This document shows, piece after piece, positions 33 through 42,780 of a stretch of 64,000 nt of DNA (position 1 is the stretch's first letter; each line of letters opens with the position of its first letter). The DNA comes from Kudoa neothunni (lineage: Eukaryota; Animalia; Cnidaria), in the NCBI GenBank assembly GCA_964304625.1, contig OZ199838.1, positions 15,899,864 to 15,963,863 of the forward strand, read 5' to 3'. The notes under the pieces were generated by a model. That model made no database searches. It saw nothing but the letters and a program-made list of their open reading frames with translations, and was not told the origin of the DNA. The position numbers and the translations under genes are program-made.

Positions 33-248
33 AAATACGACCATGGATTGATGTATGGGTATGCTCTCACAGATCCTCTTTATCCCGATAAAGTACACAT
101 CTACGATCTTTGCACCAAACCTGGATCACTCTCAAAAGGAGCTATCGCTGGTATATCAATTTCAGTTATTTTAGTTATATCAGTAATCACTGGGGTTATT
201 GTGGCAAAAATCTATAAATGGGCTTGTTTTGCTCTTCCAGAGGCGTAA
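33..248 (+). CDS. Pseudo-NTPDase (GDA1/CD39-like) family copy A, terminal exon only; rest of the gene lies upstream of the window
   Basis: AG acceptor at 31-32, then KYDHGLMYGYALTDPLYP, a TM segment (GAIAGISISVILVISVITGVIVA) and KIYKWACFALPEA*. Same last-exon pattern as the other copies. Confidence 0.85.
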   Translation, partial: KYDHGLMYGYALTDPLYPDKVHIYDLCTKPGSLSKGAIAGISISVILVISVITGVIVAKIYKWACFALPEA

Positions 249-749
249 ATGAAACTGTCAGTGCGTTTCGAAAATTTCCAAAAGGATGATTCACTAAACA
301 ATATATTATCTGGTAAAAAACATTAATTTAGTTATTTTTTCTTTATAAAGTTAAAATCTCAATTTTTCTAGTTCATTTGTGTAACCTATTTACTTAATTG
401 AATATTTTGATTTACTTTCATCAATGTTTTCTGCTTTCATTATTTAGTTAAGTCGTTTGTTACATAATTATGTAGCAATTTATTTTTTAAACTTTTTAGT
501 TTTATTACAAAAGATAAAATAAAATATCGTTTAAAAATTAAAACACATTTCATTAATGAGTAATAAGAAATATGAAGGATTTGGAATCAAATGCAATCAT
601 AATAAGTTGGTTGTCTTTTGGGAATTTCTTAAAGTATTTCCGGTTTTTATAATAATTAATTTGTCAACTTCCGGGTAATTTAAAATTTTAGTTAATGACT
701 TCAGTAGACTCAATAATTTGTTTGATAATTCATAAAAAATTTTTGTTTA

Positions 750-1310
750 AGAGAAGTTAATTATATTTATATGTGAGGAATGAAATATTAATGATATATA
801 TGAATTAAAATTTATTGTCCAGTTATAATTTCTCAAATTCAATAAAATTGTATAAAACAAATGTGTTGAAGATAAATCATTGAAAAAATGTATTTAAAAA
901 ATCAGAAAGAAAAGAATTTTAAAGTGATTATGATATAAAAATGATACGTCGCTCTAGGGTTTCGTTCCTTTGATTATATTGAAAGAAAAAATGAGCTTGC
1001 AATAAATCATTCTTTACAATTTAATGGATAAATTTTATTCTTTTATTATTCTATAAATTATAGAGGACCAATATCTAATGTAATAAATAGGTAGTAAGAA
1101 AATATTCTCATCAATCAATATTCTTCAAAAACTATGAAATATTTAAATTTCTCTTATCCAGATCTTTTTCTATTTATAAACATCATATAAATTCAAACTT
1201 TTTATTCTTGACTTATGAGTGGTTCGCGAGCTATTTTCTCAGAAGCATTAACCAAATAACACCGGTCCAAAAATATTTTGTTTTATATATTTTTACACAA
1301 CAAGCTTGAA
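750..1310 (+). pseudogene. Possible heavily eroded relic of another family copy
   Basis: Family-like fragments occur in the correct order with stops and deletions: ILMIYM (~786), SLKKCI (~877), LGFRSFD...LQFNG (~954), AG-IFF (~1162), LTYEWFASYFL (~1208; compare LGYEWMHSYSL). Confidence 0.3.
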
Positions 1311-2879
1311 AGCTAAGGTAATTGACAGTGACTATTGCAACGGATGGGAATATCTACTAAATCAGCGCTTGTATCAAGATTTTAATTGCATAAATACATA
1401 TAACAATAAATGAGTTATTATTAAAGAAATTCTTAAAAGAAAATAAATTAGTTGATTTTTTACCTCTAAGTTGGCCAACTATGTCGACTGTGTTTAATAG
1501 TTGTCTTCAATAAACTCATATTTTAGTTAATGTATAAGGGATTTTCAAATCTTTGTTATGTTGATTTTATAAAACAAGAATTTTCTATAAACCACATACA
1601 TTAATTAGGAACGCATGAACTTGTGTTAATGTGGGTTTGCAACAATGATTATAAATAAACTGCGTTACGATATGATTTCAATTAAATTAATTAATTTTCC
1701 ATTTAATTGCTGGTTTAAATTTTTATAATGGGCCTTATCGATAAGATCTCCATTTATTGCTTAAATATAAATGTCAACTATACGTAACATTACCACTTAA
1801 TTTGTTTTGAAAAGATATTTCCTGTCCTTGAATATATATATTCGGAGTAATTTTCCATTTAATAACCTTTCAGAGACCCCATTTTTCTGAAATCTGTGTT
1901 TTGGCCTATCAAAACTCTAAATTCTAGCTTATATGTTTATTTAATCTCCTATAATTATTCAATTTTTTTTACATTCATTTTTTTTAAAAGAAACCTCATA
2001 TGTTCTCGTAAAAATGTGTTCAACGGGCCGTCGGTTTATTGATTCGCCTTAGAAATCATTTTTTAAGCGTAATATCAAATGTTTTCTTATTATACAGAAA
2101 TAAAGTAATTACAACGTCAAAAATCAATAAACAATGTAAGGTGGACGTTATAGTTATTATTTCTCTCACGTTGCATAATATGATTCTGATGATGTAAAAG
2201 GATAGGATAGTTTTAGTGATTCACGTTAATACTTACAAAAACGTGTTAATTCCCAATAATTAAAGGAGGTATCATATTTTTGAAATATTTTTATAACATT
2301 CATTAATGTTTTTCATTTATTAAAATATCACGCTTCAATTTTTCCTAGAATGTCCTTACATATTTTCTTTCCATGTACTGTATTATCAAAATGGATTAAA
2401 TTATGCAATTTCAATTTCAATATTTAATTAGTGTGGCGCAAAAGTAATTGAATGTAGAAATGAACAAACTAATTTTGAGAAAGTATAAATTAATACGAAA
2501 ACCTGAAAGTAAATATTAATTAAAACTTGAATCATAACATACATTTTTATTGCTTTCAGTGAATTAGATCAAATATAAGCCATCAATCAATGTAGAGACT
2601 ACCGAGATCAACTGTGTGTCTGTGTGTATAACCCAGGGGATGCATTGCCGTTTGTGTAATTATTTGCGAAAAGAATTTGAAGTATTTTTGTCTATCTTAT
2701 AACTTAGCAATAAGATAAATTTTAAGAGCTTATATTGGTAACGCTTAGTAAAATGTTCTTGAAATTTCCTATTGATTGATTTATTAATTTTATTATTCGA
2801 ATAACATTTTTAATAGTCATAAATATACTATTTGCAAATTTAAAAAGTTAAAAGAAAATAAAATCGCTATCATAGAAAA

Positions 2880-2950
2880 CTTCTGGGGTATCTGAGGTAC
2901 CTCCATGGTTACTCGCGTAAGTTTATTGAGCGCGGTCCTTCGAGGGTTAA
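2880..2950. mobile_element. piggyBac-like right terminus; left end not resolved
   Basis: Subterminal GGGGTATCTGAGGTACCTC palindrome-like motif followed by ...CTTCGAGGG-TTAA. Confidence 0.35.
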
Positions 2951-3562
2951 CCCAAAATTTTATAAAGAGGTTTGCTTCGTTGATCCAATACCTCAAATTA
3001 ATTAAAAAATAATGGCAATTATTCACAAGATATACTGTCGATCGAATCTACAAAACTAATTATTTAGTTTTTAAATTAGCTAATAAGCGGTATAAAGTTA
3101 AAAAGGCAGTGGTTATTCTTACAGTATGGAATATCATCTAAAATAGCTAAGATATTACAACACTGATTTTAATGATGTGTAAAGCTATTTTTTATTTTCA
3201 CGAAAGTAAAATTTCATAAAAATATCTTTTTATTAAAATTCGTTGGTGAGATTAAGCGTTATATCGTAGATTTTTCTTAGATTTTGACTATATATACAAA
3301 TATTTGTCAACATAACACTTAGTGAGGGCCTTTATTTTATGGAAAAAAATGCTTTATTCATACTTTACGTGTTCGTTGAATTTGAGTCACGCACGATTTC
3401 GTCTGCACCCACGTAGCCGGTACCAGGGCTACCAGCGAAGTTTTCATAATACCCAAGGTCGAGAAAAACATTAGTATAAAGTACAAGAAAATAGAATCGG
3501 ATTTATCAAATTTTTAAACATTCTTACAATTCAATTATTACGTCTTCAGACATTAAATTTAA

Positions 3563-5978
3563 GGCAGTATCTATTGGTTAGTACAAATTTGGTTTACCGC
3601 TGTCAAGCAATCTATTTTAATTTACGATCACATAAAAAAATTACCTAGTATATTATATATTAATATATAATAAATGATAGATATTGGTCCGCAGGAACAT
3701 GCGTCGAATTACTTTACTTAGGATAAGTAAAAAAATATTATTCTTGTAATTTAACACAATAAATGATCTAGTTTACTAGTAGATTCAATTTTAAATTTTT
3801 AATGACTTATTTTTAAAATTTTATCTTCAGAATATCTATTACCTCTACATATAAAACAATAAGAAGTTGTTGATATAATAAACTCGTGATAAGTTTATGA
3901 TGTAATAAATTCACTAATAAAATCAAATTATTTATAGTTATAAACTTTTTTATGTGGATCCAAGTCATTGTGATGATTATAATTAACTCAAAACTTTAAA
4001 GAACGCTGATTGTCTAATGTTGATTTTTTGGCGTTGATCTCTATATAGAATAATTCAATTTTAGTATGTAATGAAAATTTATTATTTTATTAATATCAAC
4101 TATAATTATGTAATTTATACCTTAATTTAACTCAAACAAATTATGATTATTTTTATACTCACTTATTTAGAGTTTGTATTTAAAGTGTAATTTTGACAAT
4201 ACTAATTGAAATGTTACGTTCTGAATAAACACGTTAGTATATGATTATCCATCATTTAACTTTAATCCATAATTAAAATATTGTTCAACAAATCTTGATA
4301 TATAACTACTTATTGGCAATTTAATTTAAAAAATGTTGACTTGTGATCTTTATATTATGTATCAAAAAGTTGTTGCCATGACTGATGTTGCATATAATTT
4401 GAACTATTAAAATAAGGCTAACATATTTCAGAACGTGATAAAAACATAGTTGCGAATCTGCGGTTGGAAAAATTTATTCTATGACTTATCGTTCCACTAT
4501 GTCTTTGTCCTTAAGAAAGACTTTCGTGTTAATTTCCATTATTCAGTTATATTGTTTTAATAAGTCAAGAGAAAACTTCTTCGGTCACTTATACAAGTGT
4601 TCCGGTCGCCCCTATCTCAGTTGGTCCCCTAGGGTTGGTGATTGCAACAAAATACACAGGAGCTTTGAAATCTAGGAGCTTGTAGTAGCATCGATAAAAA
4701 TAATTTCAGGGTATGTTTCAAGGATTTTTTCATGCTAAAATCTTGAATAAATAAAACTTTAAAGTTTTTTCTGTTTTCCAAGATTTCTACATGTTAGTAT
4801 CGCGCGAAGATAGAAACCCAATATAATAAATAACAATGTAATTGACATGGTAGTGATAGAGACCGTATTAGTTAGAATAACGATAACTAATTAATGATGA
4901 TGGAAATTAGTACGTTCAGCTGTTTGGATGTGATAATGTAGGTCCATAGTAATAGTTTCCTTTGTGATCATAACACTAGAAATTTAACATGTTTCTTTTT
5001 TAGAGTCTGTACAAATTCTACATTCTTTGAGTGGGCTTTCACTTAATATGTCATGTTGGTTTAATTTTTTAGAGAAATAAACTTCCTTTTTCTCGAACAA
5101 ATTTTATGGGATAACCTTTGAACTTCAATAAATTAAAAAAGTTGTGAAATAAAATCAACTACATCATTAGTTAATCTTTTTTATTTAATTACAATTTTGA
5201 TGAAAAATTGGAGGGATCATGATTATGGGGAATGCCGAGGGATTTTGACACAAACTTTTCTTCGCCCCCACTTATTGATAATTTTAAAAACGTAGGACTT
5301 ACTCTAAAATTAGAATTTTTATTTTTTGACCGGAAGATCGCTTTCACTAAAATAATAGACAATATTACAATAAATATTCATACATAAATTCAGTTTTTTG
5401 AGAAATTTACATTTTTTCAACCATGAATACAACAGTATTTTATCTGGTAGTGTTGAATAGTTAGATTTATTACTCTACCACATCGCTTCTTCGTAGTTTC
5501 AATGGTTTTAGAATCTATGAATAAACTTCTCGCGCCATTTTATCCGAATTCCTCAATTTTCAATTTTAGTTCTACAAAACTGTTAAATGAAACTTCAGTG
5601 TAAAATGAATTATTTTCAGAAATAATATTATTGGGGCTTGTTTTATTCCTTCAGTATTCATTCCACGCAAACACGTTACGAATTAAATTCACATGTTTTC
5701 TTCCATTAAAATCAGATGTTTTGAGATAGAAGAATTCCATTTTTTCTATTATTAGTGTTCACATTGAAATATCTCTCTTTTATACAATTATTTTAAGTTA
5801 TATCATCAAGTGATGAATACACTATTTTTATTTTATAATAAAATGAAGTAATTATTTTATCAATATGAGCTTTAAATAAACTTTGAAATGTTCATTTAAA
5901 TCCGAAAATACACATTTTGAATAATGGGAAATTCGAAAATACAATAAACCGAATTTGTACGGGCCAATAGACACTGCC
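3563..5978 (-). mobile_element. Decayed Mutator-like (MULE) DNA transposon
   Basis: About 40-bp imperfect TIRs (GGCAGTATCTATTGG..TACAAATTTGGTTTA / TAAACCGAATTTGTAC..CCAATAGACACTGCC). Perfect 9-bp TSD TAAATTTAA (3554-3562 and 5979-5987). Minus-strand remnant ETYPEIIFIDAT matches the first MULE catalytic Asp motif. Confidence 0.85.
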
Positions 5979-6379
5979 TAAATTTAAATTTATCGAAGTA
6001 TGATTGCAGCGTTTTGCCACGAACACTCACTCATACTTAACGTCTAGTGAAGATCATTACACTCACAATTTATTACTTCGTTGTCCAAAATATATTTTGA
6101 AATAACGTTTAAATTTCCTAATAATTTTTGACAATGTTTACTGAGTAATTATGTAATCATACCATGTTAAACAATCTAAAGTGTTGCCGTTTAGTAACGC
6201 AAATGTTTAAAATATGCACGACAGTGGTTCCTGCGCCTCTAAGAGTGTGAACTATGGGCTTGGGGTTGCGAGATTCGATCACAATAGAAAACGATTTTTG
6301 AGAAATTTTGAGTCAGTTACACCTTATCGTATGCAAGCGGATGCGAATTTGGTTTTGTCATCTAATGGGGGTGTGAGTC

Positions 6380-7662: not shown

Positions 7663-7671
7663 TAGTTTTAA

Positions 7672-10220
7672 CCTTCCGAGTGATTCTGGGGTCTATTAGA
7701 CCCCATAGCCTGATGGAATGATATTTTGGTGCATTTCCTGATATAGAGAACTTTAGATATACTGTCTATTCTTCCAAAAATATTACTTTTCTATAATGCT
7801 TAATTAAATTAAAAAATTTTTATCTGGATGATTAAAAAAACTGTTTTTATTCACTTAATATTTTTGAGGTCTATTAGACCCCATCATTTTATTTCACCAA
7901 AAAGTGAAGAAAACCGTTTTTTAATTAATCTTAAAATTTAAAAAAATTCTACCGATTAATTAAATAGAAATTAAAGGATCAAATATATGGACATTTGCGA
8001 GAAGTGCCGAACACTGCCCGATTCTAAGACATTAGTGATTACGGTTATATCTTTTCGAGTGAAAATGATGGCGATTGCAATTAAAATCGTTGACACTGAA
8101 GAATATAGTGATTTAGAATATTATCCTCCAATTCTTATCATAATGTATGTGTCAATACACCTTCTGTGTATTTAAATAAAAATAACGAGTCATAGTTTAC
8201 CGAAATACCCACATCTTCAAAAACACGAAATGAGAATATAATGAATAAGGCTCCGGGCATTACCGCCGATGCAGCGAACAGAATAATAGCGTTAGTTGAC
8301 TGCCTGCGTATATTTTTAGACGTCATTTTCTGCGATATTATTGTCAGAAATACAAATAAATTTGGATTTCAACATTATCTCGAATCATGGAATGAGTTAT
8401 AATATTTATAATATCGTGCTTACATTGGGATTCTTGTAAACATGGCGATTTATAAATCTAAACTAGAATCTATTAAATCCTTATGGAGTGTAAACAAAGG
8501 TGGACCGATATTTCGTACAATAGTACCTTTACGTAGATTTGTTAAAATAACAAGGGCTCTACATTTTGGTGACTTTGAAACGAGACTTCAGCGAAGAGAA
8601 GAGAAGGCGATAAGTTTTTCCTGATTCAATAAATTTTTGAGAATTGGAAAGGGGTACTGTCAAATGCCTGATTCCTCATGCAGACCTAACTGTCGATGAG
8701 CAATTAGTAGCTTTTAGGAGTAAATATACATTTACGTAGTACATGCGTTCAAAGTCGGCGGTTTATGGCATAAAATTTTGCTGTTGATTGATCCTGCAAC
8801 CAATTGTTGTCATAATATATCCATTTTCGTAGGTAAAGTCAATAATCAAAGGGAAGAATGCTTAGGAGAGAGTGTTGTATTGGATCTCGTTTCTTATTTA
8901 GAATCTAATGGCAGAAATATTGTTTTCGACAATTTTTTTACCTCAATACCCCCCTCCCCTTTTCCGATAAGTTATTACAGCTTCGACTCACAATGCTCGG
9001 TATCATTAGATGTAGTAAACGAGATATTTATTCCTGAGTTAATGAAAGCGAATAGACACTGGGATTTATACAGTTCACGTTTTCTTTTGAATGACAAGAA
9101 AATGTTGCTATCATATGAACCCAAAAAAATAAGGCGGTTTTAATGTTGGCAACGTCAACAAAGAATACCAGTTTATCTAATGATATATACAGAAAGTGAG
9201 ATGTCATTAACTGTTACAACAAAACAAAAGGTGGGGTTGACACCATCGATAGAATACTCACGTCAATTAGCGTTGAGAGATATTCAAATCGATAGCCAAC
9301 AATGGTTTTCTTCAATATCTTAGATATAAGTATAATTAATGCATTTTTCATATATGAGATCGTATTCAATTGAAATAGCGCAAATAGATAAACGATCTGA
9401 CAAGTTTACTACTGTTATGTTGGTAGATTAATACAGAAGATTAACAAACCATTAGCTAGGGGCGCAATTATTATTATTGTTGTTATTGTTGCTTTGTGGT
9501 GTCTCTCTCTCTCTCTCTCTCTTGCGTTTACAACAACTACAACAACTATCGATCAAGTTCGTGACCGCCATTAATACTAAGCAGATTCTTGCGGCCGTGA
9601 TGGATATCACGATCTCACTTATTACATCAATGACAATAAAATTACAAGATCCAAGTTCCTCGAGAATTTAGCAGATGAGCTTGTCAAACCAATTTTGAAC
9701 ATTAAACGACCTAATATTCCAGCAGAAACTTTTAATAGAACCAACGAAAACTTATCAAAATTCAGACAAAGATGCTAATTATGTTCGGGAGGTGGTGACA
9801 GAAAATCATGAAAAATCTGTTCGGTACGCTTACAGTGTTGTTGTGAGCAACATTTACATGTTTTAATAGTTCATTAGAGATCAATAAATAACTCAATTTA
9901 TTTAGTAGAGTACACATTTATGTGATTTAAACATTCCATAATTTTTTATTTGCGCTAAAATAGGAATTATTATGGATTTTAACAATCCATAAGACCCAGA
10001 GTTTAATGATTGGTAATATTATTTTTGTTCTCGGCGAAACTCGTGTTGCTTCGCAAGAAAAGTTTATTATGCTAACTTTTAAACTCTTCGATAGATTTTT
10101 TAATAAATATTGAAAATAAGTTTATCACAATTTTTACAGCAAATAGAACCAATAAAAACGTGGGGTCAAATAATCCCCAGAAGCGGCAAGTGTATAGTGT
10201 TTTTCGAGGCGCTCGGAAGG
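7672..10220 (+). mobile_element. piggyBac transposon with pseudogenised transposase
   Basis: TTAA on both sides, TIR CCTTCCGAG/CTCGGAAGG, subterminal GGGGTC..ACCCC palindromes. Broken transposase motifs LTVDEQLVAFR, GYGIK, RNIVFDNFFTS, YNKTKGGVDTID. Confidence 0.92.
9395..9655. repeat. Simple-repeat-rich insertion [(TTA/TTG)n, (CT)n, (ACA)n] nested in the piggyBac transposase
   Basis: Interrupts the transposase before FLENLADELVKP; CAAGTT occurs on both sides. Confidence 0.5.
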
Positions 10221-10967: not shown

Positions 10968-12756
10968 ATGAGGCCATGGCGATTATTGTTGATGAACTTT
11001 TTCTTTATATGCTGTTTGAATCAACTTGATTATGAAGTAAAAGATTAACATTTATCTATCACTAATCTATATACTATAGTATGGGGTGTTAATGTATGAG
11101 GGGGATCACAGAGTTAGGGCTTTTGGCTATAAATTCGATATATCAAAGGCAGATTCCAAGATAATTGAAGAATTTGACGAAAATTGTCCTCCAAGTGACT
11201 TAACCACAAATAATTTGATTCACTTTACGATAAAATCATTATAGATCTATTGTATCTTTATAAACTAGAAAGGTGGAAAGATTCTATCAACCAATGTGTT
11301 AATTATGTGAACACTGAGAAACTTCCTAACAAGGAGATTCGTTTCGAATATGTGGGTAGAGAATTTTTAAGAGAATTAAGGTAGTAAACAATAAAACTAT
11401 TTAACTTGATTATTTTAAAGGGAAAAAGATAAAAGTTCTTTTAAGGCGACTGTGAATACGTTTAAAAATCTATTTCAATCTAAAAATAAAATCAGTGAAG
11501 CCAACTTTGTAACTGTGGTCAGCCCAGGAGTGGTAGTAGCATCTAGAATAATTTATATTCGTTCAAATGAGGTGGGCTTTTTAATTGTTGCCTTAACTGC
11601 ATAAATTACATCGATGTAGTTGTTGGCGGCCGAATATGACGGGTTTTTATCTTTTGAAAATCAACACACTTTGTTGGGTTATGGAATTAGAAATTTTTCC
11701 GAACAATCCGCTGGAATACATCAAATGTCAATAGTGTCCGATAATGGAGTAGACTATATAGTTGCTGGTCTGGTTGGTACAATGTCAGAAAATTATTTCC
11801 TAAGAGGGCATGAACCACACGTAAAATTTCTCAATAACAACAATAAATAGATTTTTATATTTTTTAGTATCCGTACCACTTCCGACTGGATCATTTAAAT
11901 GAAGGCGATTGCCTTTGCATTAAAATGGGTGTTATATTTGATGTGTGGATACATTCTAAAGAAGGTTCTGAATGCAAGTTTGACTCATCTGATCAAATAA
12001 ATCTGTATGTGTTTGGAAAAGGTGATACCTTTAAGGAGGCCGATTGCAAAACAAAAATTTTCAATGCCTACAAAAATGATAAGATGTTAAAAGCAAAGGT
12101 GTGTGGCAGTAACAATCTTATTACCTACCCACGTGCGATGAACGATAAAAAGCTATTGGTATACAAATACAGGATATCATTCATGTAATTGAATTTCAGG
12201 TTTACTTACCACTCAAGTATGACGCTTTTGATGGACAAACCACATTAAACATGTTCCAACAACATGCGGATTCGCAATGTTTACGATACAAAATAGAAAC
12301 TAAAATTGTAAACTAATTAATTAATTATTTATACATTTTTATGGGTTTTTTTCGTTCTCTATAGGGAGCTATCAGATTCTGGGTTAAGGAATGTTTAGCT
12401 GTACAAGAGTATTTACACTTTTTAAATTCTTTCATCAATAGTCATGGTATTATCTACACTTTAAAAGTATGATAACTGTGTTAATATTAATTTGTGCTCC
12501 TTTTAACACAATTTAGAAGCTAGACTACAAATGGATTAATGGTTACGCTTCCACCGATCCTCGCTATCCGAACACAGTAAACATAACGGAATTTACTCCC
12601 GATGTTGTACAATCCAAATCAACCAGGATAGGAATGGTGGTAGGAATAGTGGTTGGGGTCGCATTGTTCATAATTTTTGGTGTAGCAATTGTCGTGCCGC
12701 TTGCAAAACGTCATGGCCGGCTTTGTTGGAAACATAGGGATATTGCTTTTAGTTAA
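10968..12756 (+). CDS. Pseudo-NTPDase (GDA1/CD39-like) type I membrane protein, copy B; 9 exons, 470 aa
   Basis: Exons 10968-11036, 11080-11194, 11245-11380, 11421-11571, 11620-11820, 11868-12158, 12200-12307, 12365-12466, 12517-12756. All introns GT-AG, 40-57 nt, and the frame is continuous. ACR-like blocks: YGVLMYEGDHRVRAFGYKF, IRFEYVGREFLREL, VVSPGVVVAS, YDGFLSFENQHTL, KWINGYA. Confidence 0.88.
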
Positions 12757-12803
12757 ATTCATTTGCATCTTCATTATTATTCTTCTTTATCTATTATCTA
12801 CCA

Positions 12804-13761: not shown

Positions 13762-14162
13762 TATTAAATATATTTCGTTCATTTTTATTTTTAGAAAATC
13801 TCTTTTTGATCTGAGAACTTTGAAAGATAATTGATCAGCTTATAATTTTATATTCGTTATAAAATATTTAATATTTCTGTATATAGACTATTCTTTAAAC
13901 TGAGAACAAAAAACAAAATATTATTTGTTTCATGTACTTATTCAAACGTAATTATTTCTTGAAATAATTTATTAAATTAATTCCTATTATCTTCGAATAT
14001 TGATTAATATTTATATTTAATAGTTTAATGCTTCAACTATTAATGAATTATATTGATTACTATTATTAATCATAACAAAACTTATGTAACGGAATTAAAT
14101 AATTAATTATAAAAATAGTTTCTTAAATTGTATTTATTAATAATTATATATATATATATATA

Positions 14163-15423: not shown

Positions 15424-18011
15424 ATGAACATCATTTTAAGTATCTTTCAAACACTATTATCTTGTTGTGTTTACAATTCTATTCAATCATATAACATAAA
15501 CGAAGTAATTTATAATTATCACGATTTATCGTAACTGCCAAAAGAAATACGGAGTATACTTGTACCAACACAAGTACAGAATGAAGCCATACGTATACAA
15601 ATTTGATAACTCTGAAAAGTTACCAACTAAAGTTGATATTGGAATGGAATATTGTCATAAAGGTATCAATCTCATTGAATTTGAAATATAAAGTGTATTC
15701 AATTAGGTTATATTGAATTCTACGCAATAGACAGCTGGAAAAATCGTATTCGGGAATGTATAACAGAAATAAACAAGGTTCTGAGCCAAAGTGATGTAGC
15801 TCAATCGAATATTCATTATGAATACTTAAGCCGTAGACGATATTTAGAGACTGGGTAAGGACCTATAATATATGCATTATTACAAATTAGTGCCTCATAA
15901 AATAATTAAATGTTAATAACAAATCATGTATATTTTAAAATAGAGATGAAATCCATGTTAGATGGTATTTATGGATAAAACGAATAAATTATGTGTTATT
16001 ATATTTAATTATTACCATGTTTGTAATTTTTAAACTAATTCCGAATATTTTTTAGCCAATTTTACGGTTGAAATAGTATTATTCATTTCATAATTATTTT
16101 TTCCTCTAGTCTTTATATTATCCTATATTTCATTAAATGATTGTATATCAATATTTTATTTAAAAAGCAGTTATTATGTTAGTAATCCACCTAAAAATTT
16201 CCAAATATTTATTCTAATATTTTCATATAGTTATAGTTGATTTAAATTAGAATTAATTACTGTTCGAGTCGATTAGATTATTTTCTTCATGTTTGGGTTA
16301 TAATAAATTAGATATTTGAGTTATTAATTAATAATATTTAAAATTTTATTCTTTGTAAAAATTATGAATCATTTTAATCTAACGATTAATTATTATTTAA
16401 TAAAATAATAAACTATTGATTAATTTCAACAAGTTATGTTAGAATTTGATAAAATAAATAAGTCCATGAGCTATATAGTTTGTATATATTATTTTATCTA
16501 AAATTGTTCTTATTTTTATATATATATATTAAATTTGATATCCTATTTTGTTTATGCAATCGTTTTAAGAATTAAATATTATTTTCCGTGGGACCTTTAA
16601 AATATAACTTTTGATAGTTATTAAGATTATATTTTCACATAAAAAAATAATTAACATAATTTCAATAAATTAAATGAATTGGTATATATTTTTTAGAATT
16701 GAAGAAATAATCAATAATGAATTCCATAATTATCCAAAAATTAATGGTGAGACTTTTGTAAGATATGTAAATGCAGCAAATGAAACTGCTTTCAGAATGC
16801 TTTATTTTCAGCTTCAACCGGTATTTTTTATGACAGAGTGGACAGTTTACGTGAATTCGTTTAATAGAAATTAAAAAATAAAGTTTTTGGCTTTATTTCA
16901 TTTGACGGAAGGGATTTTCTGAGTGGTTACTATTATAACGATAAAATCAAGATGAGACAGAATTCGTCAAAAATATTAATTTCCTGGAATGGCGTAATCA
17001 ACACAATTGTTACCAATAAAATTCCAACATTTATGTTCCACAAAATATCAGAAAATAAACTAAAAAAAGTAATATATTTTTCGAAAACGATTAATGCCAC
17101 TAATTAAAGCATTCTGATTACACAATATTTCCGAATTCAGAACTGCCTTCATGTGGAGCAAACCTATTGAGTGTTATCTTCCCTGACTTAACCACATTAA
17201 ATCATCGTACGAAATGTGCTTTCACCATAGAGGACAATATCAAAATCTATCCATTCAATGCTCAACTAAACTTTATCGATGTTAAGTGCAAAGAAGAAGT
17301 TGTGGAATACATTAACAAACAAGGTAGATTTCAAAAAAATTATTGCCGCGCCAAAAAATATTTGAAAAACACAGAATATAATGAAGCAAGAAATGAAATA
17401 AAAGTAAATAACCATTAGGATCAAAATTGTTTCACCAACTTAAGATTTATTTTCCTCTCAGTCGTTATTATCGAAACTCCAGTTTATTTCCACTTAAATT
17501 GTCAGATCTTTGGAATAAAATTAATTACATATGTGGACTTATCGAAAACCCACTCCAAATGTATCTTCTATATTGAAGCAAATAAATGTATGGTTCGTAA
17601 TATTTAAATATAGCTGAGTTATGTTCAGGTTTTTATTTTTCCTGTTTACTGATACCCCATTATTTGCAATATGTGGGTAAATTTGTTGAACAACACCAAA
17701 TGTCATATTCAAATCGAGGTATAATAAAAATAGAATGACATTTTCTCAATAATTTTAGGACCTGAATCATGAATGGTTGCTTGCTTATGCCTTAAGAGAT
17801 CCACGTTTTCATAACCAAGCAACCATTAGTCATATTAAAACCAGTTATTCTATGAAAAAATTCATTATCATTGGAATCTTGTTTGGGAATTTTGTTGGTG
17901 GTTATCGTTGGTTCCGCATTTATTTTCTTCAAGATCAAAATATACCGACTATTGGGTAAGCACCGTGGAAATCACATTCTTGAAGATTATCATAAGCAAT
18001 TGATGTTATAA
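15424..18011 (+). pseudogene. Pseudo-NTPDase family copy C, frameshifted (pseudogene or assembly indels)
   Basis: Same exon layout (KYGVYLYQHKYRMKPYVYKF, IRECITEI, VNAANETAF, FGFISFDGRD, EWLLAYALRDPR). Exon 4 is interrupted by about 0.7 kb (~15980-16696). Frame breaks around 17560-17720, and an extra G at 17885-17887 falls inside the TM segment. Confidence 0.75.
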
Positions 18012-22956: not shown

Positions 22957-24747
22957 ATGATAAAAATATTAGTGATTCTGATAATGTCTTATTTCCTTCA
23001 AACCTCCAATGCCGTTGACAACAAGGTATGATTTTATGTGTAACCGGAATATCAACATTCTAAAATATAGTGTGGAATAATCATACACTCAGGAGGGAAA
23101 AATCTGATGGCCTACATATATACGTTTGACGCATCTGACGATAACGCAGTTCCAATCAAAGTTTCCCATTCTATATGCTACAATGGTATCACATTTGAGA
23201 GATCAAATCATTCAGAATATAATTTAGAGCGTTCCTTCATAATAGAAATGTCCAGCACGGATGATTATATTAAAGCTATCAAGAAATGTATCCTAAAAGT
23301 AATGGGGATATTGGAAGAAAAGGGAATATCAATTGATGATGTTCGTATGGAGTATTTTGATCACAATCTTGCTTCAATTCCATCGTAATAATGTTATTCC
23401 TAATCGCTAATATTCACACCAAACTATATTCTAAGAGAGTTTATTAATGCGAATGTAACCCATAATATTGAGAAAATTAATGAAGAATTTAAAACCTACA
23501 ATCCTATTCATGGTAGTGGATTCTACAATAATATAAGTTCTAAATATGAGTCTACCTACACATTGCTTTACCACCACATAGAGAAAGTATTATTTACAAT
23601 TATTGATGCATTTTTACTCCATTAATGGATAAATGTAATTTTTGGTAAAAATTAGCATGATTTTGACGGGTTTTATTATTTCAATGGATGGAACATATTA
23701 TCTGCCTACATAGTAGACTACCTTGGTAACAAGCCCGAAGGAGTGCAACTCTATAGAATAAAATGGAAAGGACGAGAGTTTAGATTGGTTTCATGGGATT
23801 TTATTTCATCAGATGTTTATCACGGCAGATCTCTGCGTATATTTAACGTAACTTAATTTGATAACTGGATTATATATCTCATTCTCTACAGTTATCTGCA
23901 GAATTTGAGAAACTTCAGAAACGTGAGTTGAAAAGTGGTGATTGTGCGTGCAGAAGAATGAGTACGCTGGTTTTAAGTTGGTTTTCTTCTGATGCTAATG
24001 CATGTTCTTCTTGGACAAAAGATGATATAATTATATTTCCATTCAATCGAGCATCCTCATTTGATGAAGCAAAATGCAAAGAAAAACTTGAAAAGCGTCT
24101 TAAGAAAAATCCATCTTTTATGATGGCTGTTTGTAAAATGTTGCAAGGAATTAATTCTTTTCATATCTTTAACAAACGGAAGAAATTTGCAGTACTTATG
24201 TAATAGTGGTAGATTTTATGGTTAAAATCAAGATTTATTTCCCTTTACATCTACCTGCGGGCTTAAAATTGCCGTCAACTTTAGAAGAAATTGAAAACCA
24301 GTTGAAACTAATTTGCCAATCGTATGAAAAAGGGAGTCACGTAGATTTATAGTTTGCGGGTTGTTTGTCATTAATTCTTTTCAGGCGTTTTTGGAGGAAT
24401 GGGTTATGAATTGCGCTATTCCACAACTCTATTTAAGGACTTTAAACAATTCGGTAGTGGCAAATAAAATATCTTACACTATTAAGGTTGATTACCAATC
24501 ATGATTGTATTATACATATTTTTTGTAGAAAATGGACTATCAATGGCTGGATGGATATAAATGGACTGATCCGCGCCTTCGAAATCGAGCAGAAATATTT
24601 GTTTCTAGTGGATTTTCGTATAGAGTATTATCCAAAGCTGCTATTGGTGGAATCGTTGGGTCAATTCTGATTGTGATAATAGTGGTTTCGGTTATAATTC
24701 TGATAGTTTTTAAAAAATACCGACGACATCGAGGTATATGTGTATAA
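22957..24747 (+). CDS. Pseudo-NTPDase family copy D; 9 exons, intact
   Basis: Signal peptide MIKILVILIMSYFLQTSNA. Blocks CGIIIHSGGKNLMAYIYTF (ACR1-like), VRMEYFDHNL (ACR2), ISSKYESTY (ACR3), FDGFYYFNGWNIL (ACR4), QWLDGYKWTDPR (ACR5). TM followed by KKYRRHRGICV*. Confidence 0.88.
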
Positions 24748-25712: not shown

Positions 25713-26803
25713 TAGACCTTTAAACAATCGAGGGTAAATTTTGAAAGATAATTCATCTCTATAATTAATTATATTAGTTTAAAACGCTTGAAACATGTAG
25801 CCACACAGAAATGTTTAAGTAAAATATGAAATATGACGCCATATTTCACTTTATATTCAAAAACTAGATAATAAATGTTTATATTTATATTGTTGAGAAA
25901 AGTAATAACAAAATGCTTAAAAAACGTATATTTTGATTTTTGACGATTGCTCTATTTTAAATTTAATTTTAATTAAAAAATAATTTGTTAGTATTTTTTT
26001 TTAGTTACTTAATGTATATAAATAAAAAGACAACTCAATAAAATAAATTTAAAATTTTCATGTTTGCATTTTTGAACAAATATTGTTATAACATTTTTTT
26101 AAACATGAATAAACTAAGCAAAAAAATTTATAAACTAAAAACCGCACTAAGTTACGCCATAGTTTAATTGAAACATTTTAATTCTAATTTTAAATAGAAT
26201 AGATTAGAAAGTTCTCTTTTTAAAATACGAAGTCAAGATTGAACAGCTACTAACTTATTACCAACAGGTAGAAACAAAAAAATTCAGTGAACAATTAATG
26301 ACTGCAAATTTGTTAAAATTATGGAGAAATAATAATTTTTTGGATGTATTTATCAACAACATAGAGATTCCATATGTTGTGCTCGACTTAAGATTTATTT
26401 CCAGTTTATAGATTATTCTTTTTTGGCTGAAATTAACTGCCTAATGAGATTTTTGTGATAAGATAAAAAATTTAAAAACTTTTGAAAAAGAAGTGAACTA
26501 ACAAGCCGAATTGTAACAAATGACTTTATTTCCGATTTTGTATGAGACACCGCCCCAAGTTTGTACACAGATACTGTAGTACTGTATTACTGTAGTTTAA
26601 ATGATATTTTAAAAGGAATAAAATAATTTATTCCAAAAAATAACGCGCGGTTAAATTTTGATAAGAAAATTCCTCCTAACATTGATTACAAAAATCCACT
26701 TTGACCGAATTACACAATCTCTTTAATACGTTGACTTAATCTCTTCGAAATAGAGGATAATCCCTATACCCTCGAAATGAACCCTCGATTTTTTGGAGGC
26801 CTA
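25713..26803. mobile_element. Non-autonomous hAT-like element, copy 1
   Basis: TIR TAGACCTTTAAACAATCGAGGG / CCCTCGATTTTTTGGAGGCCTA; near TSD GATAAGAT/GATAAATT. Inverted homologue at 50705-51917. Confidence 0.8.
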
Positions 26804-29080: not shown

Positions 29081-30902
29081 ATGATGATACTTGTGAGGAT
29101 AGTGTTTGTTTATCTGTGTCGAAAAATCGCTTCTATCGATAATCCGGTAAAGAAATGTATTTAAAATATAGCTTGAATTTTTATGTTAGGTGGGAGTAGT
29201 AATTCATAGCGATGGAAACGATTTGATGGCCTACATTTATAAAATTGTTCAATCCGAACCGTCCCCCTCAATAATCGTCGTGTCTCATGATAAATGTCAT
29301 AGCGGTATTAAAATACTCAACTAAAAACCTGTTAACAATTATTATAGAGCGTTACTACATAGTTGATGTAGATGGACCAAATAATATGATCAAAATGCTT
29401 AAAAAATGTATCATTAATGTGAAAAGCGTGTTGAATCAGAATGGGCTCTCAATGGACGGAATCCGCATGGAGTATTACGATCATATATTCAGAGTAGTTT
29501 TGAGGTATTGGAAGTTTTAATTCATTTCTGTAATCTGTGTGTCATTATTCAAAGACACAAAATAAAAGGAGTACCAAATACATGGTCAGACGATATCAAA
29601 GCAATAAATAATGAATTCAAAGAATACACTCCGATCAATGGTGATAATTTTTTCAATTATAATAGTAGCCAATTCGAGGTAGCGTATACGATGCTTGGGC
29701 TAAAAAAACAGCCAGTATTACTTCGTCTTTAAAACTTTGTTATTAATAATCTCAACTATAAGGATCTCATGAAAGATTGTGATGGCTTTTTTTATTTTAA
29801 CGGCTGGGGACTGCTATCTGGATATTTGGTTGATCATACCTATAATTTACCTCCTGCATCACATCTTAATATTATTTCGTGGAATAATGAGAAATTAAAT
29901 TTGGTTGACTGGAGTATGCGTTCATCACTAGCTGATCAATTTGATCGATTGTTGATTTATAATGTTTATTTATTATTAAATTGAATATTATTTAATATTT
30001 CCCATTAACAGATCACCGAAGAGTATGGTCAATTGGAGGTTGACGAACTGAAAAAAGATTATTGTAGCTCTTTATACATTGGCGTAATATTACGTAATTG
30101 GTTTTATTCTGATGGTGAAAGTTGTTCGCTCGAAAAATCAGATCAAATAAAATTATACCCCATTGGGAAGGGCGATAACTTTAATTTTGCTCGCTGTAAA
30201 GAAAAGTTGCTGAAACATTATAACAAAAATCCGGAATTTATCAAAGATGTATGTAAATATCTCGTGGAGGCTAGCATTCGCCCGATATCTGAGAAAAAAC
30301 GTAAATTCGCGGTAAAGATAGGATTACTAATCGTTTAAAACAAAATACTAAAATTAAGATCTTTTTCCCTTTTAAAGTCCCTCTCGGTTCACAGACCGTT
30401 AAATCATTAGACCAACTTCAACGATACTTCGACACATTATGCCAAACTTATGAATCTGCAAATGAGGTTTTTAATAGGTTTCAATTTTATTTTATTTCAA
30501 ATAAAGGATTTATTTGATGAGTGGTTATTCAGATGTGTTCTGCTTCAACTGGGTTTTAGATTTTTGAAAAGTTCCATTGAACAAAATAAACTTGACTATG
30601 TTATTAAGGTATGATTTTAGATATACGTGTAGTATAATATTATTGATTTGTTTGAGTAGAATATAGGATACGAATGGCTGGATGGTTATGCGTTAACCGA
30701 TCCACGTCTTGAAAATGCAGCTAATATTACTGGATTTCTCCCAACACAAAAGCATTTGTTATCAGCCGGTGCTCTGGCAGGAATTGTCGTTTCAATTCTA
30801 CTTATCGGAATCATTGTCTCTGTCATTATTTTGGTGTTTTATAAAAGACGCCAAAGGGATCAATTACCAACTGGCGATGAGCCTCACAGCGATCCCATCT
30901 AA
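29081..30902 (+). CDS. Pseudo-NTPDase family copy E; 9 exons, intact
   Basis: Blocks VGVVIHSDGNDLMAYIYKI, IRMEYYDHIF, YNSSQFEVAY, CDGFFYFNGWGLL, EWLDGYALTDPR; TM GALAGIVVSILLIGIIVSVIILVFY. GT-AG mini-introns at the family positions. Confidence 0.88.
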
Positions 30903-33633: not shown

Positions 33634-35460
33634 ATGATATTATTGGTTTCAATTTTATTTAGTCGCTTTTTTTATGCCTTATTTTCAGATGATCTAAAAG
33701 TAAGATAATATGTTTTTAAAACCATATTAATTGTTTCGAAAAGTACGGAGTGATAATACATAGCGCAGGGCAATCTTTGATGGCCTACATATACAAGTTT
33801 AATTCATTTGATGAAAATGCTGTTACATCCACATTATCCCATGAAATTTGTCATAGGGGTGCCTCTTATGTGATTATGGAATAAACTAACAATGTATTTA
33901 GAAAGACATTACATATGGCATTTTGATAACCCAGATAATATTATAAAAATTATTAGAAAATGTATTAATACAGTAAAAGAATTATTCACTAAGCAGAGCA
34001 TACCAATGGACAACGTTCACCTGGAATACTATGATCAATGGCATCGCGTGCTTTTAAAGTAATTCAATTAAACTTTCTATTTTATAAATATACATGCTCA
34101 TATATTAAGAGAGAGTTTACAGACAAATTTTGAGCAGTCAATTAATAAAATAAATGAAAACTTCCGTGAATACACTCCAATTCATGGAGATAAATTCATT
34201 AATCTTAAAAATTCAAAGTTTGAGGTTGCATACATAATGCATTATCTTCAAGAATTAGAGCGTGTATTTATTTTTTCTATAAGATATAAATTAGTGAAAT
34301 TCTAAAATTGTAGAATTTCAAGGATGATGCTGATGGATTTTTTTATTTTGATGGATGGGACCTGCTAGCTGGATACTATTTTGACAATATCGATAACAGT
34401 ACACTTCCTCATAGAACACAGCTAAGTAATTTTTCATGGAATGAGGACATAACAAAGTTTGTATCTTGGAGTGTTCGATCATCGTTATTTGATCATAAAG
34501 AAATCTCATATTTACACATTGTAACTTTATATTTATAGATGATTTTAAAAATACATTAATTTATTGAGGTATCTAAAGAAATGGGTACATTAATGGAAGA
34601 TGAATTGAAAACCACCGAGTGTAGAAGTTTATACATTGGAATTATTTTTCAAAATTGGTTTCGCCTGGGCCGAAAAAAATGCTCAGTCGAATCTTCAGAT
34701 CAACTGAAGCTGTATCCCTTTAAAAAGGGAAAAACCTATAATGATACTTTGTGTAAAGATAAGGTTATGGAGTACTACGATAAACATCAAAACTTTTTGA
34801 ACACAATGTGTAATGTTTATTGGGATGCTAAAAACTTTAGGATAATAAACGACAGAAAAAGATTTGTGGTATTTTGATGCAAAAAAAGTCGATTTCGAGC
34901 ATTTATTTAGATTTATTTAACATATAAAATACCTGTCGGATTACATTACCCACCTTCATTAGAAACGTTGGGAAAGGTGTTTGAATCTTTGTGTCGATCG
35001 TATGAAGAAGATACGCTAGTATTATATAACTATATAGATAGAGTCCAATTTTAATTTATTAGGCCTTTCGTGATGAATGGGCTTTTAATTGCGTTCTGTT
35101 CCAGACCTATTTTCGATTTTTAAAAAGTGTTGTTAACCAAAACTATATTTCTTTTTCTATCAAAGTATAATAGTATTAAAAAAATTGTGTAGATATTCCT
35201 TTTTTATTTTCTCATAGAATCTTGGATATGAGTGGATGCACAGTTACTCGCTGACTGACCCTCGTCTTTCAAATAGAATAAAAATATCGGATTCTATTGT
35301 TGGTTCGAATAGTTTCAAATCAAAATCCAAAACTATAATAATAGCTGTTTCAACAATATTAGTTGGTATCGTAGTTTTAGTTTCTCTTCTGGTAATCGTA
35401 TGGAAATATAAGAAAGGTGAAAACTTAATAACGTGTGGTTCTCGGTCTAACCCTCGCTAA
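33634..35460 (+). CDS. Pseudo-NTPDase family copy F; 9 exons, intact
   Basis: Blocks YGVIIHSAGQSLMAYIYKF, VHLEYYDQW, LKNSKFEVAY, ADGFFYFDGWDLL, EWMHSYSLTDPR; TM IIIAVSTILVGIVVLVSLLVIVW. Confidence 0.88.
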
Positions 35461-37815: not shown

Positions 37816-38814
37816 CAGTAAGTAACCAATTTCACGCACTTTTTAAAAACCTATTTAATTGGAATATTGATCGGTCACTGTTTACATAATATTTTTCTTA
37901 TAATATTTCAATCAAAATTGTTATTATAATTATTTTAAAAAGTTGTGAAATAATGTAATTAAAAGTCATGTGGTCGGCCGATTTCAAGCACTTTTTTCAG
38001 GTACTTCTTGTTTATTAATGAATTTAGTCAATATTCAATGCCAAAAACTCCTATAACCATACCTATTGCCGAAAAGTACAATATAGCTTATTCTCATGAA
38101 TATCTCCTAGCTAATGACACAAAAACTGCCACTGTATCATATTTTAAAATATCTATTATATTCTAATGGCATCCTAGAGATGAAAAATAAAATAATCAAA
38201 ACCTATACATGTTGTTAGAATCCAAAAATAGAAATTATTAGCATACAGGGCAGTTTAATTCTATTTATGAAGATTTATATGAATGGATTAGGTAGGTGGA
38301 CACGAAGCAGAAAGATTGTAATAAGCGTCGTCACTATAATCATCAAGAGAAACCAATCAGCCAAAGAAAAGGGTTTACCTTCATGTGCAATTCGTGGAGT
38401 GTTTCGTTGTTTTTAAAAAAGTTCCAACATTTAAAAATCAAATTTTATTAGCTAATCTGATGATGCTACCTACTTCATAATAGACCAATCAAATCAGAAC
38501 ACTTTTTAAAAGATATCCTGAAAATTTTATTTACAATGTAGACGAAACTGCCTTATTCTACCGATAACAACAAGAAAAGTATCTTATAGATCGTTGAAAA
38601 ATAATTTTGTTCTGTTAACACGTTTCTCGAGTTTTAGTTATCGTTTAAAAATTAATATATAGTTAATTAACCTTTTTAAACGCGACTTAATTATTATTAA
38701 ATGTTAATTTTTTCTCAAATAATTTCGCGCGCAAATGCGTGAAATTATACGTGACCGAGTTGAGGCATTTTTTTCTTGGTTCCGAGGGGATTACGTGAAA
38801 TTGGTTTCTTACTG
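37816..38814 (+). mobile_element. Internally deleted pogo/Tigger-type transposon
   Basis: TA flanks; TIR CAGTAAGTAACCAATTTCACG / CGTGAAATTGGTTTCTTACTG. Remnant IYNVDETALFYR (first Asp of DDE_1) at ~38529-38565. Confidence 0.85.
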
Positions 38815-39064
38815 TATAAAGTAAATAATACCTTTATTCTCGACAACATTTATTGGATTAATCATGTAAAAAAAATAAAATAAAAATATGGCATTTCTAA
38901 ACATAATTTTTTAAGATAGAAATAAATTTTGAACGAAATGTTAGCAAAAGATTAATTTAATAAGGATTATATTATGTTTTAATTAAAATTTGTTAGATTT
39001 ATTGAAATATACATTTTGTAAAGAAATTAATTTATCGTAATATTTACGAAATTAGTACTTTACG

Positions 39065-39095
<31 letters not shown>

Positions 39096-39099
<4 letters not shown>

Positions 39100-40008
39100 C
39101 GCAGGGTTATTGCACACTTAGAAATATTGTCGAAACTTCAAAATATGCAAATTAATTATAGATATAAATCGTGAGATAAGAGTAAAATATATCGATAAAT
39201 ATAATTATAAAGTTAAGAAATAATTTTTTTGCTGCGGAAATAGGAGTACATGCTTATTTCGCACCTGAAATATGTTGTTTGGCTACATTGGCATGGTTAG
39301 TACGCAGTAGGAAAATAGGAAAAATTATCGCTTACTAGAAGAAAACGTATAGATTATTAAATAATTGGAAAAATTAGGAATTAAGAGTGGCTCTAGAGCG
39401 AACATCGTTAGGCGCTCTAGCCTTAAAACAGTCATCAAATTTAATACAATTGTATCAATAAAATCATAAATATTTGCAGACTTTATTTCAAGTGATTTAA
39501 GATTTTATCGCAAAACTCTTATAAACAAAATTTGAACTACTCGATATGAGATATGAGAATGAATGGATCAAACTTTCGATAACGAAATGTATAAAGTTGT
39601 GCAGAGAGTATAATATAATAGGAAAATAAATTGGCCAATGGCATAAAGGACGACAATCCTATAACTGTCGGTCGAGGATAGTTCCATGGGTTTGCTTCGA
39701 GAGTTATTCTAAAAATGAACAATTTAAATAGAAAATCTAAAAGAAATATAGAAATGAAGAAATTATTCAAAGTCTACGGCATCGAAATGCTGAATCACAT
39801 TACAAAGTTAAATTTTTCACATCTCTCTATTAAAGTTATTATTAGTGCAACGAGAGAATAAATAAAAAAGCAGAAAAGTGGTCGCGCACCCACAAAAATT
39901 TCCCATATATGTGCATATGTGCGGACGCTAAAGCGTGGATATTAAATAGTGCAGGGTTATTATACACTTGAGTCCTTGTTTCAAAAATGTTCATAGAATC
40001 CCTGCACA
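39096..40008. repeat. Unclassified element embedded in a (TA)n microsatellite
   Basis: (TA)n on both sides; about 50-bp direct repeats GCAGGGTTATT..ACACTT..TTCAAAA at ~39100 and ~39950; inverted CCCTGCAC at ~40000. Confidence 0.5.
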
Positions 40009-40402
40009 ATTGTACATATATATATATATATATATATTATAATAAAATTCATTTATTTATTCAAAATGTATCGTTTAACTATAATGAAGTTCAAAATATA
40101 TTCCAAAAAAATAGTAAATATTGCTTTGTATTAATATAATAAGATTAAAACACTTATTAATGAAGAGCGGATAATCATTATGAATATATATATATATATA
40201 AAATTTAAACAAATGAATTGATGAAGTTTACTTTTGCTCTGATTAAATTAAGATATTTCATGATTTATTAATTATTGTTATTTTATTAACTATCTCAAAG
40301 TTTACTTTATAGTTATCACTTTTATTAACAAACAAAGATATTTTTTCGGCTAATCAAGTTTTAACGTGGTCAATCTAGTAAATACCCTGTTAAAAGCTTG
40401 TA

Positions 40403-42780
40403 ATGAAATTGCCTGTTTTATTTTTCCTAGTGTGTTTTGGTTTGAATACTGAATGTAATGGAAAAATAAAAGTAAAACAGTGTATTTTTCATGGGATAAT
40501 GTTTGTTTTGATAGTTTGGAGTAATAATCCATTTTTTCGATAATTTCTTAATGTCATTCATCTACCAAATAAATTACGACACCAAACCTGCAACAATGAT
40601 AGTAATATCGTTTGAACCTTGCTACGAAGGTATAAAATCTGTCCATTATTTATGAATAAAATATCCCATTCAGGAGATTATACCATAGAACCATTAGACA
40701 GATTAAAAATGATTCTACATACATGTATCGACACTGTTCTCCATATGGATTTAATGGCGAGAGTAAAATTGTCAGATATTCATATTGAATATGTTGGTAC
40801 GTATGAGTGGGCAGAAAAAAAGTATATTTAATAAAATTGGATCAGTATATTGTTAGAATTGTACAGGAAAAATGATTTAAAAGGATATTATAAATATTTG
40901 AAAGAATTAAATCAGTTATTTTCAAGACATTCCCGAATTCCTGATAAGAATTTCGCTAGTGTAATCGATGCAAACGACATGTTGGGATACCACCTGCTCT
41001 TCCTTGAAAGCCAGCTAGTAAGACAATTACAGTCGAACCTCGCTCGATTACTCGGAAAATTTGGGACCAGCGATGTTCAGGCTAATCGAACATAAGCTAT
41101 GTTTGGTGCGTGTATCCTTAAAATGTTCTACTTAAAGGGTTGTCCACTTGATTTATAAACAATTTTTACTATTTACGAAGTAGAATATTTTATCTTATGC
41201 AACTTATTTTAAAATACATTGGCATATCTATTAACTAATAATATGGATACGTACAAGAAAAACAATACATAATCATGGGAGAGAAACACGCCTACAAAGG
41301 AGTAATCCAATTATTTAAATAATCGGTAGTTAATTTTTGTTTAATATACATACAAACGTAAGTTCAGGTATAGTACATATTTAAATAAGAACTGAATGCT
41401 TAACTAAAGTATTAAAAGAGAAATTTTTAAATAATTAACCTAGAAGTATTTTTATTTTAAATATTTTACATATTGCGATGTTATATACGCTACATTGTAT
41501 ATGTAATACGGTGATGGGTGGCACTTTTATCCGGAAATATGATTAAATAGTTGTTCCCGATAATCGAGGTTCGACTGTATTTTTTTAATGAAGGCTTGAT
41601 CAAATTTATGCATTTTAGGGGGAAAATTCGATGCCTTATGGGATCATTGCATATGATCACAAGAAATTGTTGATGAGTTCCCGTATTATAAAACCGTTAT
41701 CCTTGGTTCTGAATTACCCAAAAATAAAGATACATTGGAAAGGAAATCTTAAAACACATATCACCAAGTCGATCAATAACCTACCTCTCTATGAAGCCAT
41801 CGAAAGTAACCAACCACATGTATTTTTAAATTTGTTAGCCGATATTAAGCTTAAATCTTAATTTAAGAATCCTAACTTGAACACTATACCAGTGTTGGAC
41901 TTGGAAGATTGTGCATCCCAATATTTGAGTGTTTTATTTACAGATTGGAGACGTTTCGTAGATCCAAAACAATGTTCAATTCCTACTGTGAACCAAATCA
42001 AGTTATATCCATTCCAAATGAAGACCTCTTTTAAATTTGATGAGTGTAAAGAAGAAATTATAAAACATTTCAGAAATAATGCAAAATTTCTAAAGAATTA
42101 TTGTGAGTCTGGAAATCGTTACTTTCTTCCAGAAGCCGCATTAAATAAATCCTTCTACGTATAAAATTAATTATAAATCATTGTTTTAAATATTAATCTT
42201 AGTGTTATATGCCGGAATCTGATCATACTATTGAGAAGTATGTGAGTGAGAGCGATAAGAAAAGATCAAAATACTACAAATATCAAAAATTGATCGACAC
42301 CGAATGTGTTACCTACCATAAATTTGTTCCCCTCATTAAGAATAAGGTAAACAATTCTGCGAAAATTTTACAAAAACTGCAAATAAAAATTAGACACGTA
42401 ACGACTGGTTTGATATGTGTGTTATCTCGGCAAATTATGTGGTATACTTGGATGGTCTAGCCAAAACATATCAACTTACCTGTTCCAAAAATGTTATTTT
42501 ATTATACGTCCATAAATTTATTTATTATTAACTAATTAATTAATTAATAATGTAGGATTTACATGAAAGATGGGTGGAAGGTTATGCGTTAACGGATCCA
42601 CGTTACCCAGAATTCGGTTTAGTATCCATATTATACGCTGCCTTATCATCTGCAGTCATGATCGGGATGATTATTGGATTATTCGGGATTGGTTTAGTCT
42701 CTCTTGTCATTACGATTTTGAGTGAGAAAAACAGAATAAAAATATTATGCCCAGTTTCTTTACCGATAATAGAAATTTAA
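40403..42780 (+). CDS. Pseudo-NTPDase family copy G; 9 exons, intact, intron 4 expanded by a MITE
   Basis: Signal peptide MKLPVLFFLVCFGLNTECNG. Blocks FGVIIHFFDNFLMSFIYQI, IHIEYVGTY, IDANDMLGY, YGIIAYDHKK, RWVEGYALTDPR; TM. Intron 41018-41618. Confidence 0.85.
41030..41577. mobile_element. Tc1/mariner-pogo type MITE (548 bp) inside intron 4 of copy G
   Basis: TA TSD; TIR CAGTCGAACCTCG / CGAGGTTCGACTG; shares GGAAAATTTGG(T/G)ACCAGCG with 14163-14311. Confidence 0.9.

Follow-up and report, generated by a model that had tools for sequence, protein, structure and literature searches.

The tandem array and its gene models

Kudoa neothunni is a fish-muscle parasite, and myxozoan genomes are rich in orphan genes. 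The genome of this myxozoan of yellowfin tuna comprises three chromosome scaffolds and 40.2 Mb, with about 5,300 predicted genes (PMC12239612). We examined a window of 64,000 nucleotides (assembly GCA_964304625.1, contig OZ199838.1, positions 15,899,864 to 15,963,863 of the forward strand) carrying a tandem array of genes for which a preliminary description, made from the letters alone, had proposed a CD39-type NTPDase scaffold, loss of catalysis and rapid diversification at the parasite surface. Models built exon by exon from the window coordinates upheld the array itself, with seven head-to-tail copies on the plus strand, of which five are intact nine-exon genes with open frames, one is frameshifted and one is cut by the window edge. 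Because exon profiles recover every nine-exon unit in order, the array is far beyond chance. Copy starts are spaced 4.5–7.5 kb apart, the first interval being about 12 kb.

Copy 1 (L012) is represented by its last exon (18–247), which encodes the TDP motif and a transmembrane (TM) segment, exons 1–8 lying upstream of the window. Copy 2 (10968–12756; 470 aa) is intact, with exons at 10968–11036, 11080–11194, 11245–11380, 11421–11571, 11620–11820, 11868–12158, 12200–12307, 12365–12466 and 12517–12756. Copy 3 (15424–17990, end approximate) is open through exon 6, with a short exon 4 (124 nt) and a third intron of 841 nt; splicing at the expected sites would leave the 7/8 and 8/9 exon junctions out of frame, and the frame changes within the TM of exon 9. 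Because of these breaks we regard copy 3, which also forms the longest branch of the exon 6 tree, as a probable pseudogene. The intact copy 4 (22957–24747; 470 aa) has exons at 22957–23025, 23071–23185, 23228–23384, 23436–23586, 23656–23847, 23892–24191, 24233–24340, 24385–24486 and 24529–24747. Two intact copies of 483 aa follow, copy 5 (29081–30902) with exons at 29081–29146, 29190–29304, 29348–29504, 29555–29714, 29763–29963, 30012–30311, 30359–30466, 30507–30608 and 30660–30902, and copy 6 (33634–35460) with exons at 33634–33699, 33744–33858, 33902–34058, 34110–34263, 34314–34520, 34569–34868, 34911–35018, 35063–35164 and 35218–35460. The array ends with the intact copy 7 (40403–42780; 480 aa), whose exons lie at 40403–40471, 40515–40629, 40674–40821, 40867–41017, 41619–41819, 41868–42158, 42203–42346, 42394–42492 and 42556–42780.

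Every intron of the five intact copies has GT-AG splice sites and measures 40–69 nt, with the single exception of a 601-nt intron in copy 7; introns of 49 bp have been reported for K. neothunni, and the short array introns agree with this. The intron phases are 0,1,2,0,0,0,0,0 in all five, internal stops are absent, and pairwise identity among the copies is 20–40%. Each encoded protein begins with a hydrophobic stretch (KD9 2.5–3.2), carries one to three N-glycan sequons (counted inside exons) and ends in a single C-terminal TM segment (KD19 2.7–3.5) followed by a tail of 12–22 aa. Eight Cys residues are common to the five (one each in exons 2, 3, 7 and 8 and four in exon 6), as is a W..GY..TDPR-type motif. 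Thus the signal-peptide-like start, conserved Cys, TDPR-type motif and TM previously ascribed to these genes, and the length of 470 aa ascribed to one of them, were all recovered. The long intron of copy 7 sits at the exon 4/5 junction, the same junction at which another copy on contig 1 (L024:6906 to L025:502; G000:C1:15857–15860 kb) carries a 3.6-kb intron.

Relationship to the NTPDases

A six-frame search of the genome with PF01150 matched two loci, L001 and L003, and no locus of the array family. L003 (G000:C1:884130–887228, minus strand) is an NTPDase gene of nine exons that retains each of the five apyrase conserved region (ACR) motifs and has a signal-like exon 1 and one C-terminal TM; it is itself barely detected by Pfam (GDA1_CD39 match in exon 2, E = 3e-4) and is the leading candidate for a functional ecto-apyrase in this parasite. 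A paralogue at C3:5318106–5319240 is 43–55% identical to L003 by exon. L001 (G000:C2:7277245–7281069) is an ENTPD4/7-like NTPDase with intact motifs, an N-terminal TM and different introns, and just two relatives of it were found, in two Logan assemblies at 52–54% identity.

The intron phases of L003 over its nine exons are exactly those of the array family, and the coding introns of ENTPD1 follow the same series. Internal exon lengths of the family and of L003 are closely correlated (r = 0.983, permutation P = 6e-4). For exons 3, 4, 8 and 9, the L003 exon that the family profile matches best is the one with the same number, with pairwise E values of 2.6e-4, 1e-3 and 7e-3 for exons 3, 4 and 8, respectively, and an exon 9 match that is confounded by its TM. 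Alignment of exon 3 pairs the first disulfide Cys and the ACR2 strand, that of exon 4 pairs ACR3, and the combined shuffle P for exons 2–8 was about 0.004. The family further resembles L003 in its signal-like exon 1 and C-terminal TM, whereas L003 keeps ACR1–5 and places one Cys in exon 5 and another five in exon 6. The L003 ectodomain contains ten Cys, eight of which are kept by the family. In copy 1 the second and the fourth exon 6 Cys are both missing, and this paired loss hints at a rewired disulfide; another copy lacks the fourth only.

Structure prediction was applied to the natural read-through frame of exons 2+3, for which AF2 returned a β1-β2-β3-α1-β4-α2 model with pLDDT 81. Among its 50 best structural matches, almost every protein belongs to the ASKHA superfamily; ENTPD4 (Z 5.4) and a legume NTPDase (Z 5.3) rank second and third, aligning over the N-terminal lobe at a root-mean-square deviation of 3.0–3.1 Å, and a GDA1_CD39 cluster is placed first in the atlas structure ranking (TM-score 0.52). 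Z scores of up to 5.7 provide topology-level support for an N-terminal RNase H-like lobe, and the predicted model shows this lobe of the family to be an ASKHA fold. Foldseek lists Ppx/GppA, glucokinase and NTPDase1/2 for the same model, with E-values that are not significant. Weak exon or profile matches to nsp12, SMN and ICT1 in the Pfam and PDB searches were set aside as chance, and tRNA-synthetase matches from the atlas feature search were dropped owing to a low recognition score.

To locate the active-site positions, residues were tallied in register with L003 across 17–19 sequences, the tallies for exons 3–5 including one or two foreign sequences. At the Asp position of the ACR1 DXG motif, Asp occurs in 0 of 17 (His in 12, Tyr in 4, Asn in 1) and the Gly is kept in 2 of 17. 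ACR2 (G/A-T-A-G-x-R) is kept in part, its Gly in 13 of 18 and its final Arg in 9 of 18, with the Thr position replaced by Arg, Gln or other residues, often Arg, and a new Arg beside the Gly in 9 of 18. The Asp of the ACR4 DXG motif is likewise absent from all 19 sequences (Ser in 10), as is the first Gly, whose position holds Asp, Glu or Asn (Asp/Glu in 17). The ACR5 Trp before the C-terminal TM is aligned with that of L003 in most copies. In all productive NTPDase complexes the two DXG aspartates engage the metal cofactor (PMC12489842); since the family has lost both, it probably does not carry out normal NTP/NDP hydrolysis. Loss of the DXG loops, in line with the non-catalytic role proposed earlier, is thus supported for ACR1 and ACR4, whereas the catalytic Glu of ACR3 persists in 12 of the 19 sequences.

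Compared with the cell-surface E-NTPDases (CD39/NTPDase1, 2, 3 and 8; PF01150), the family is alike in its length of ~470–480 aa, its ASKHA N-terminal lobe, the order of its ACR-like blocks, the ACR5 Trp before the C-terminal TM and the Cys pairs of exons 2/3 and 7/8. It differs in having neither DXG motif, in lying below Pfam detection, in its 18 copies, in having one TM and a signal-like N-terminus where E-NTPDases have two TMs, and in having eight common Cys rather than ten. By its defining motifs the family is therefore not an E-NTPDase, yet it is very probably descended from E-NTPDases. The gene structure in common with L003, the ASKHA fold of exons 2+3 and the motif tallies are indirect evidence, but together they leave us with high confidence that the ancestor was a CD39-type NTPDase.

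Family size, evolution and proposed role

The exon profiles located 18 copies in the K. neothunni genome, in three clusters: ten on contig 1 (15.849–15.943 Mb), six on contig 3 (8.516–8.548 Mb) and two on contig 2 (11.458–11.467 Mb). These counts, which supply the genome-wide census that the preliminary description had left to be made, are lower bounds. The contig 1 copy at 15.849 Mb has a stop within exon 6, and the contig 2 copies (L036:2541–2921, L037:2–424) have a longer Ser/Thr-rich stalk between ectodomain and TM. A lone weak exon 3 profile match at G000:C3:10369949–10370095 on the minus strand (E = 0.003) may mark a more distant member. When the profiles were searched exhaustively against 1.84 billion proteins, six exon-sized sequences stood out as convincing relatives; they come from three other samples (ERZ28624939, ERZ4740346 and SRR33529766). 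One relative-bearing contig from these samples retains the same exon series as the K. neothunni family and belongs to another organism, because its best K. neothunni match is only 38%; its source is presumably another Kudoa.

A tree of exon 6 divides the copies into two groups, one from contigs 2 and 3 (98/98) and one from contig 1; the foreign sequences adjoin particular contig 1 paralogs without grouping by sample. The tree rests on one exon, with several forks under 95; the pairing of foreign sequences with particular paralogs implies that the subtypes seem older than the species split. In the sole recent pair, L031/L032 (G000:C3:8520–8531 kb), the nonsynonymous rate (dN) is below the synonymous rate (dS) in exons 4, 5, 6 and 8, and nucleotide difference is 24% in exon 6, 2–4% in exons 2–4 and nil in the compared part of exon 9, a mosaic that suggests partial gene conversion or focused diversification. 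Neither species-specific turnover nor positive selection was apparent from the exon 6 tree and this one pair.

We lean, with modest confidence, toward an old Kudoa family of pseudoenzymes with type I membrane topology that go back to a CD39-type ecto-NTPDase and now serve as surface binding proteins (adhesins or receptors). A duplicated ecto-NTPDase would have retained its two-lobed, disulfide-braced ectodomain while the phosphate- and metal-binding loops were replaced, with His usually taking the place of the ACR1 Asp, and Ser usually that of the ACR4 Asp, ahead of an acidic residue at a position that requires Gly, and this replacement would have ended NTP/NDP hydrolysis. The copies would be displayed on the parasite surface, where each long-lived subtype may bind a host or parasite partner via its cleft or surface, and nucleotide breakdown would be carried on by L001, L003 and probably the C3:5.318 Mb paralogue. 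The short tails suggest binding or adhesion over signalling.

Several results weigh against this reading. Exons 2, 5, 6 and 7 do not match L003 significantly when taken singly, and no Pfam GDA1_CD39 or PDB NTPDase sequence match was obtained for exons or exon profiles searched exon by exon. A non-NTPDase ranks first, tied, among the structural matches of exons 2+3, and the middling Z scores show ASKHA/RNase H-like topology rather than NTPDases specifically; exon 6 folded alone (pLDDT 69.5) gave no structural match. These negative searches, together with Z scores below 6, would also fit a family unrelated to NTPDases, whose resemblance to them reflects a widespread RNase H-like topology plus chance. 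We consider this highly improbable, as L003 agrees with the family in the number and lengths of its exons, in all eight phases, in the positions of its Cys and in the order of its motifs. The reading of ACR4 depends on a register that rests on one conserved Gly and exon position, because the exon 6 match to L003 is not significant. The catalytic Glu position of ACR3, three before a conserved Tyr, has kept its Glu in most sequences, and a strand-4 Glu without counterpart in L003 is invariant (18/18), which together allow residual or new chemistry. An NTPDase-derived enzyme with a rebuilt metal site, acting on another substrate through the ACR1-position His, the strand-4 Glu, the ACR3 Glu and the ACR4 acidic residue, could account for the recurrence of these residues despite low overall identity, and ASKHA members such as TsaD/Kae1 do use His-based metal sites. 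The four residues could form a putative new site; nevertheless, only the strand-4 Glu is invariant among them, and copies 2 and 7 are intact yet lack the ACR3 Glu, and we regard such an enzyme as unlikely. It is conceivable, though doubtful, that the NTPDase cleft was rebuilt family-wide into a His/Glu/Glu/Asp site, giving an undescribed class of ASKHA-fold surface receptors, the ancient subtypes of which would recognize different ligands of the host, for instance in tropism for muscle or nerve.

A non-hydrolytic sponge or sensor for nucleotides or phosphate compounds, masking extracellular ATP in fish muscle, would be in keeping with the ancestry of the scaffold and with the partial retention of the ACR2 Gly and its adjacent new Arg, the ACR3 Glu and the ACR5 Trp. 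However, the glycine-rich phosphate-holding loops of ACR1 and ACR4 are replaced by bulky or acidic residues, and stoichiometric binding achieves less than the enzymes that the genome retains, making this role very unlikely. The preliminary description had proposed a rapidly diversifying surface family, with variant antigen among its candidate roles, and surface antigens or decoys switched or diversified against fish antibodies would be consistent with a family of 18 weakly similar type I proteins encoded in three tandem clusters, with the breakage of at least two of the copies and with the gene conversion that the L031/L032 mosaic suggests. This proposal fared poorly, as sequences from elsewhere are interspersed with the K. 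neothunni paralogs and pair with particular ones (in one exon, with moderate support), dN is below dS in the most diverged exons of the recent pair, and recent duplicates are few; we judge it improbable. That other samples contain the same subtypes, and that dS exceeds dN, favors long-established, stable receptors or adhesins over switching antigens. The sequence comparisons thus favor long-kept specialized surface proteins, with which immune pressure on exon 6 would be compatible.

Parasite NTPDases have been placed at the host interface before, since TcNTPDase-1 of T. cruzi has been tied to adhesion (PMC8630654), and Neospora NTPase genes are reported as tandem repeats (PMC4915099). The Kudoa family would have an NTPDase scaffold at the host interface in common with TcNTPDase-1 and the tandem Toxoplasma/Neospora NTPases; those proteins are active and present as few near-identical copies, whereas the Kudoa family has 18 copies at 20–40% identity and no DXG motif. 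In Toxoplasma ROP5 pseudokinases and inactive T. cruzi trans-sialidases, enzyme scaffolds were amplified in tandem and catalytic residues lost, with a presumed binding role. The pattern in Kudoa is the same, although the folds differ and the sequences are unrelated; parasite pseudoenzyme expansion is thus already known, and the NTPDase scaffold for it is new. Searches of the open-access literature turned up no account, for any organism, of an NTPDase family that had expanded and lost catalysis, and apyrases go unmentioned in the K. neothunni genome paper (PMC12239612) and in the Sphaerospora molnari preprint.

With this analysis 18 orphan genes of the predicted set gain an ancestry, a topology and testable residues, and a gene family expansion is brought to light in a genome known for loss. 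To our knowledge, almost no Kudoa surface proteins are known, and the family offers candidates for host attachment or sensing by a muscle-dwelling fish parasite, as well as for diagnostics and fish vaccines.

Other features of the window

Directly after the array, a GPN-loop GTPase gene of GPN2-like type lies at 47068–48050 on the plus strand (Pfam ATP_bind_1, E = 4e-43) and could serve as a synteny landmark when the array is sought in other Kudoa. Pieces resembling an adhesion G-protein-coupled receptor, with a GPS-like Cys motif and TM helices, are found at 56799–58467 on the minus strand. A decayed piggyBac-like transposase (Pfam DDE_Tnp_1_7) occupies 7680–10200 on the plus strand, between copies 1 and 2, and decayed transposase fragments of pogo-like (Pfam DDE_1) and probably hAT-like type lie on the same strand at 48862–49883 and 53106–54325, respectively. 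Dispersed non-coding repeats of ~1 kb and ~80% identity pair 4686–5844 with 55644–56611 and 25763–26760 with 50733–51791, one pair being direct and one inverted, and a 633-nt tandem duplication is present at 59548–60480; these repeats and the duplication are probably old non-autonomous elements.

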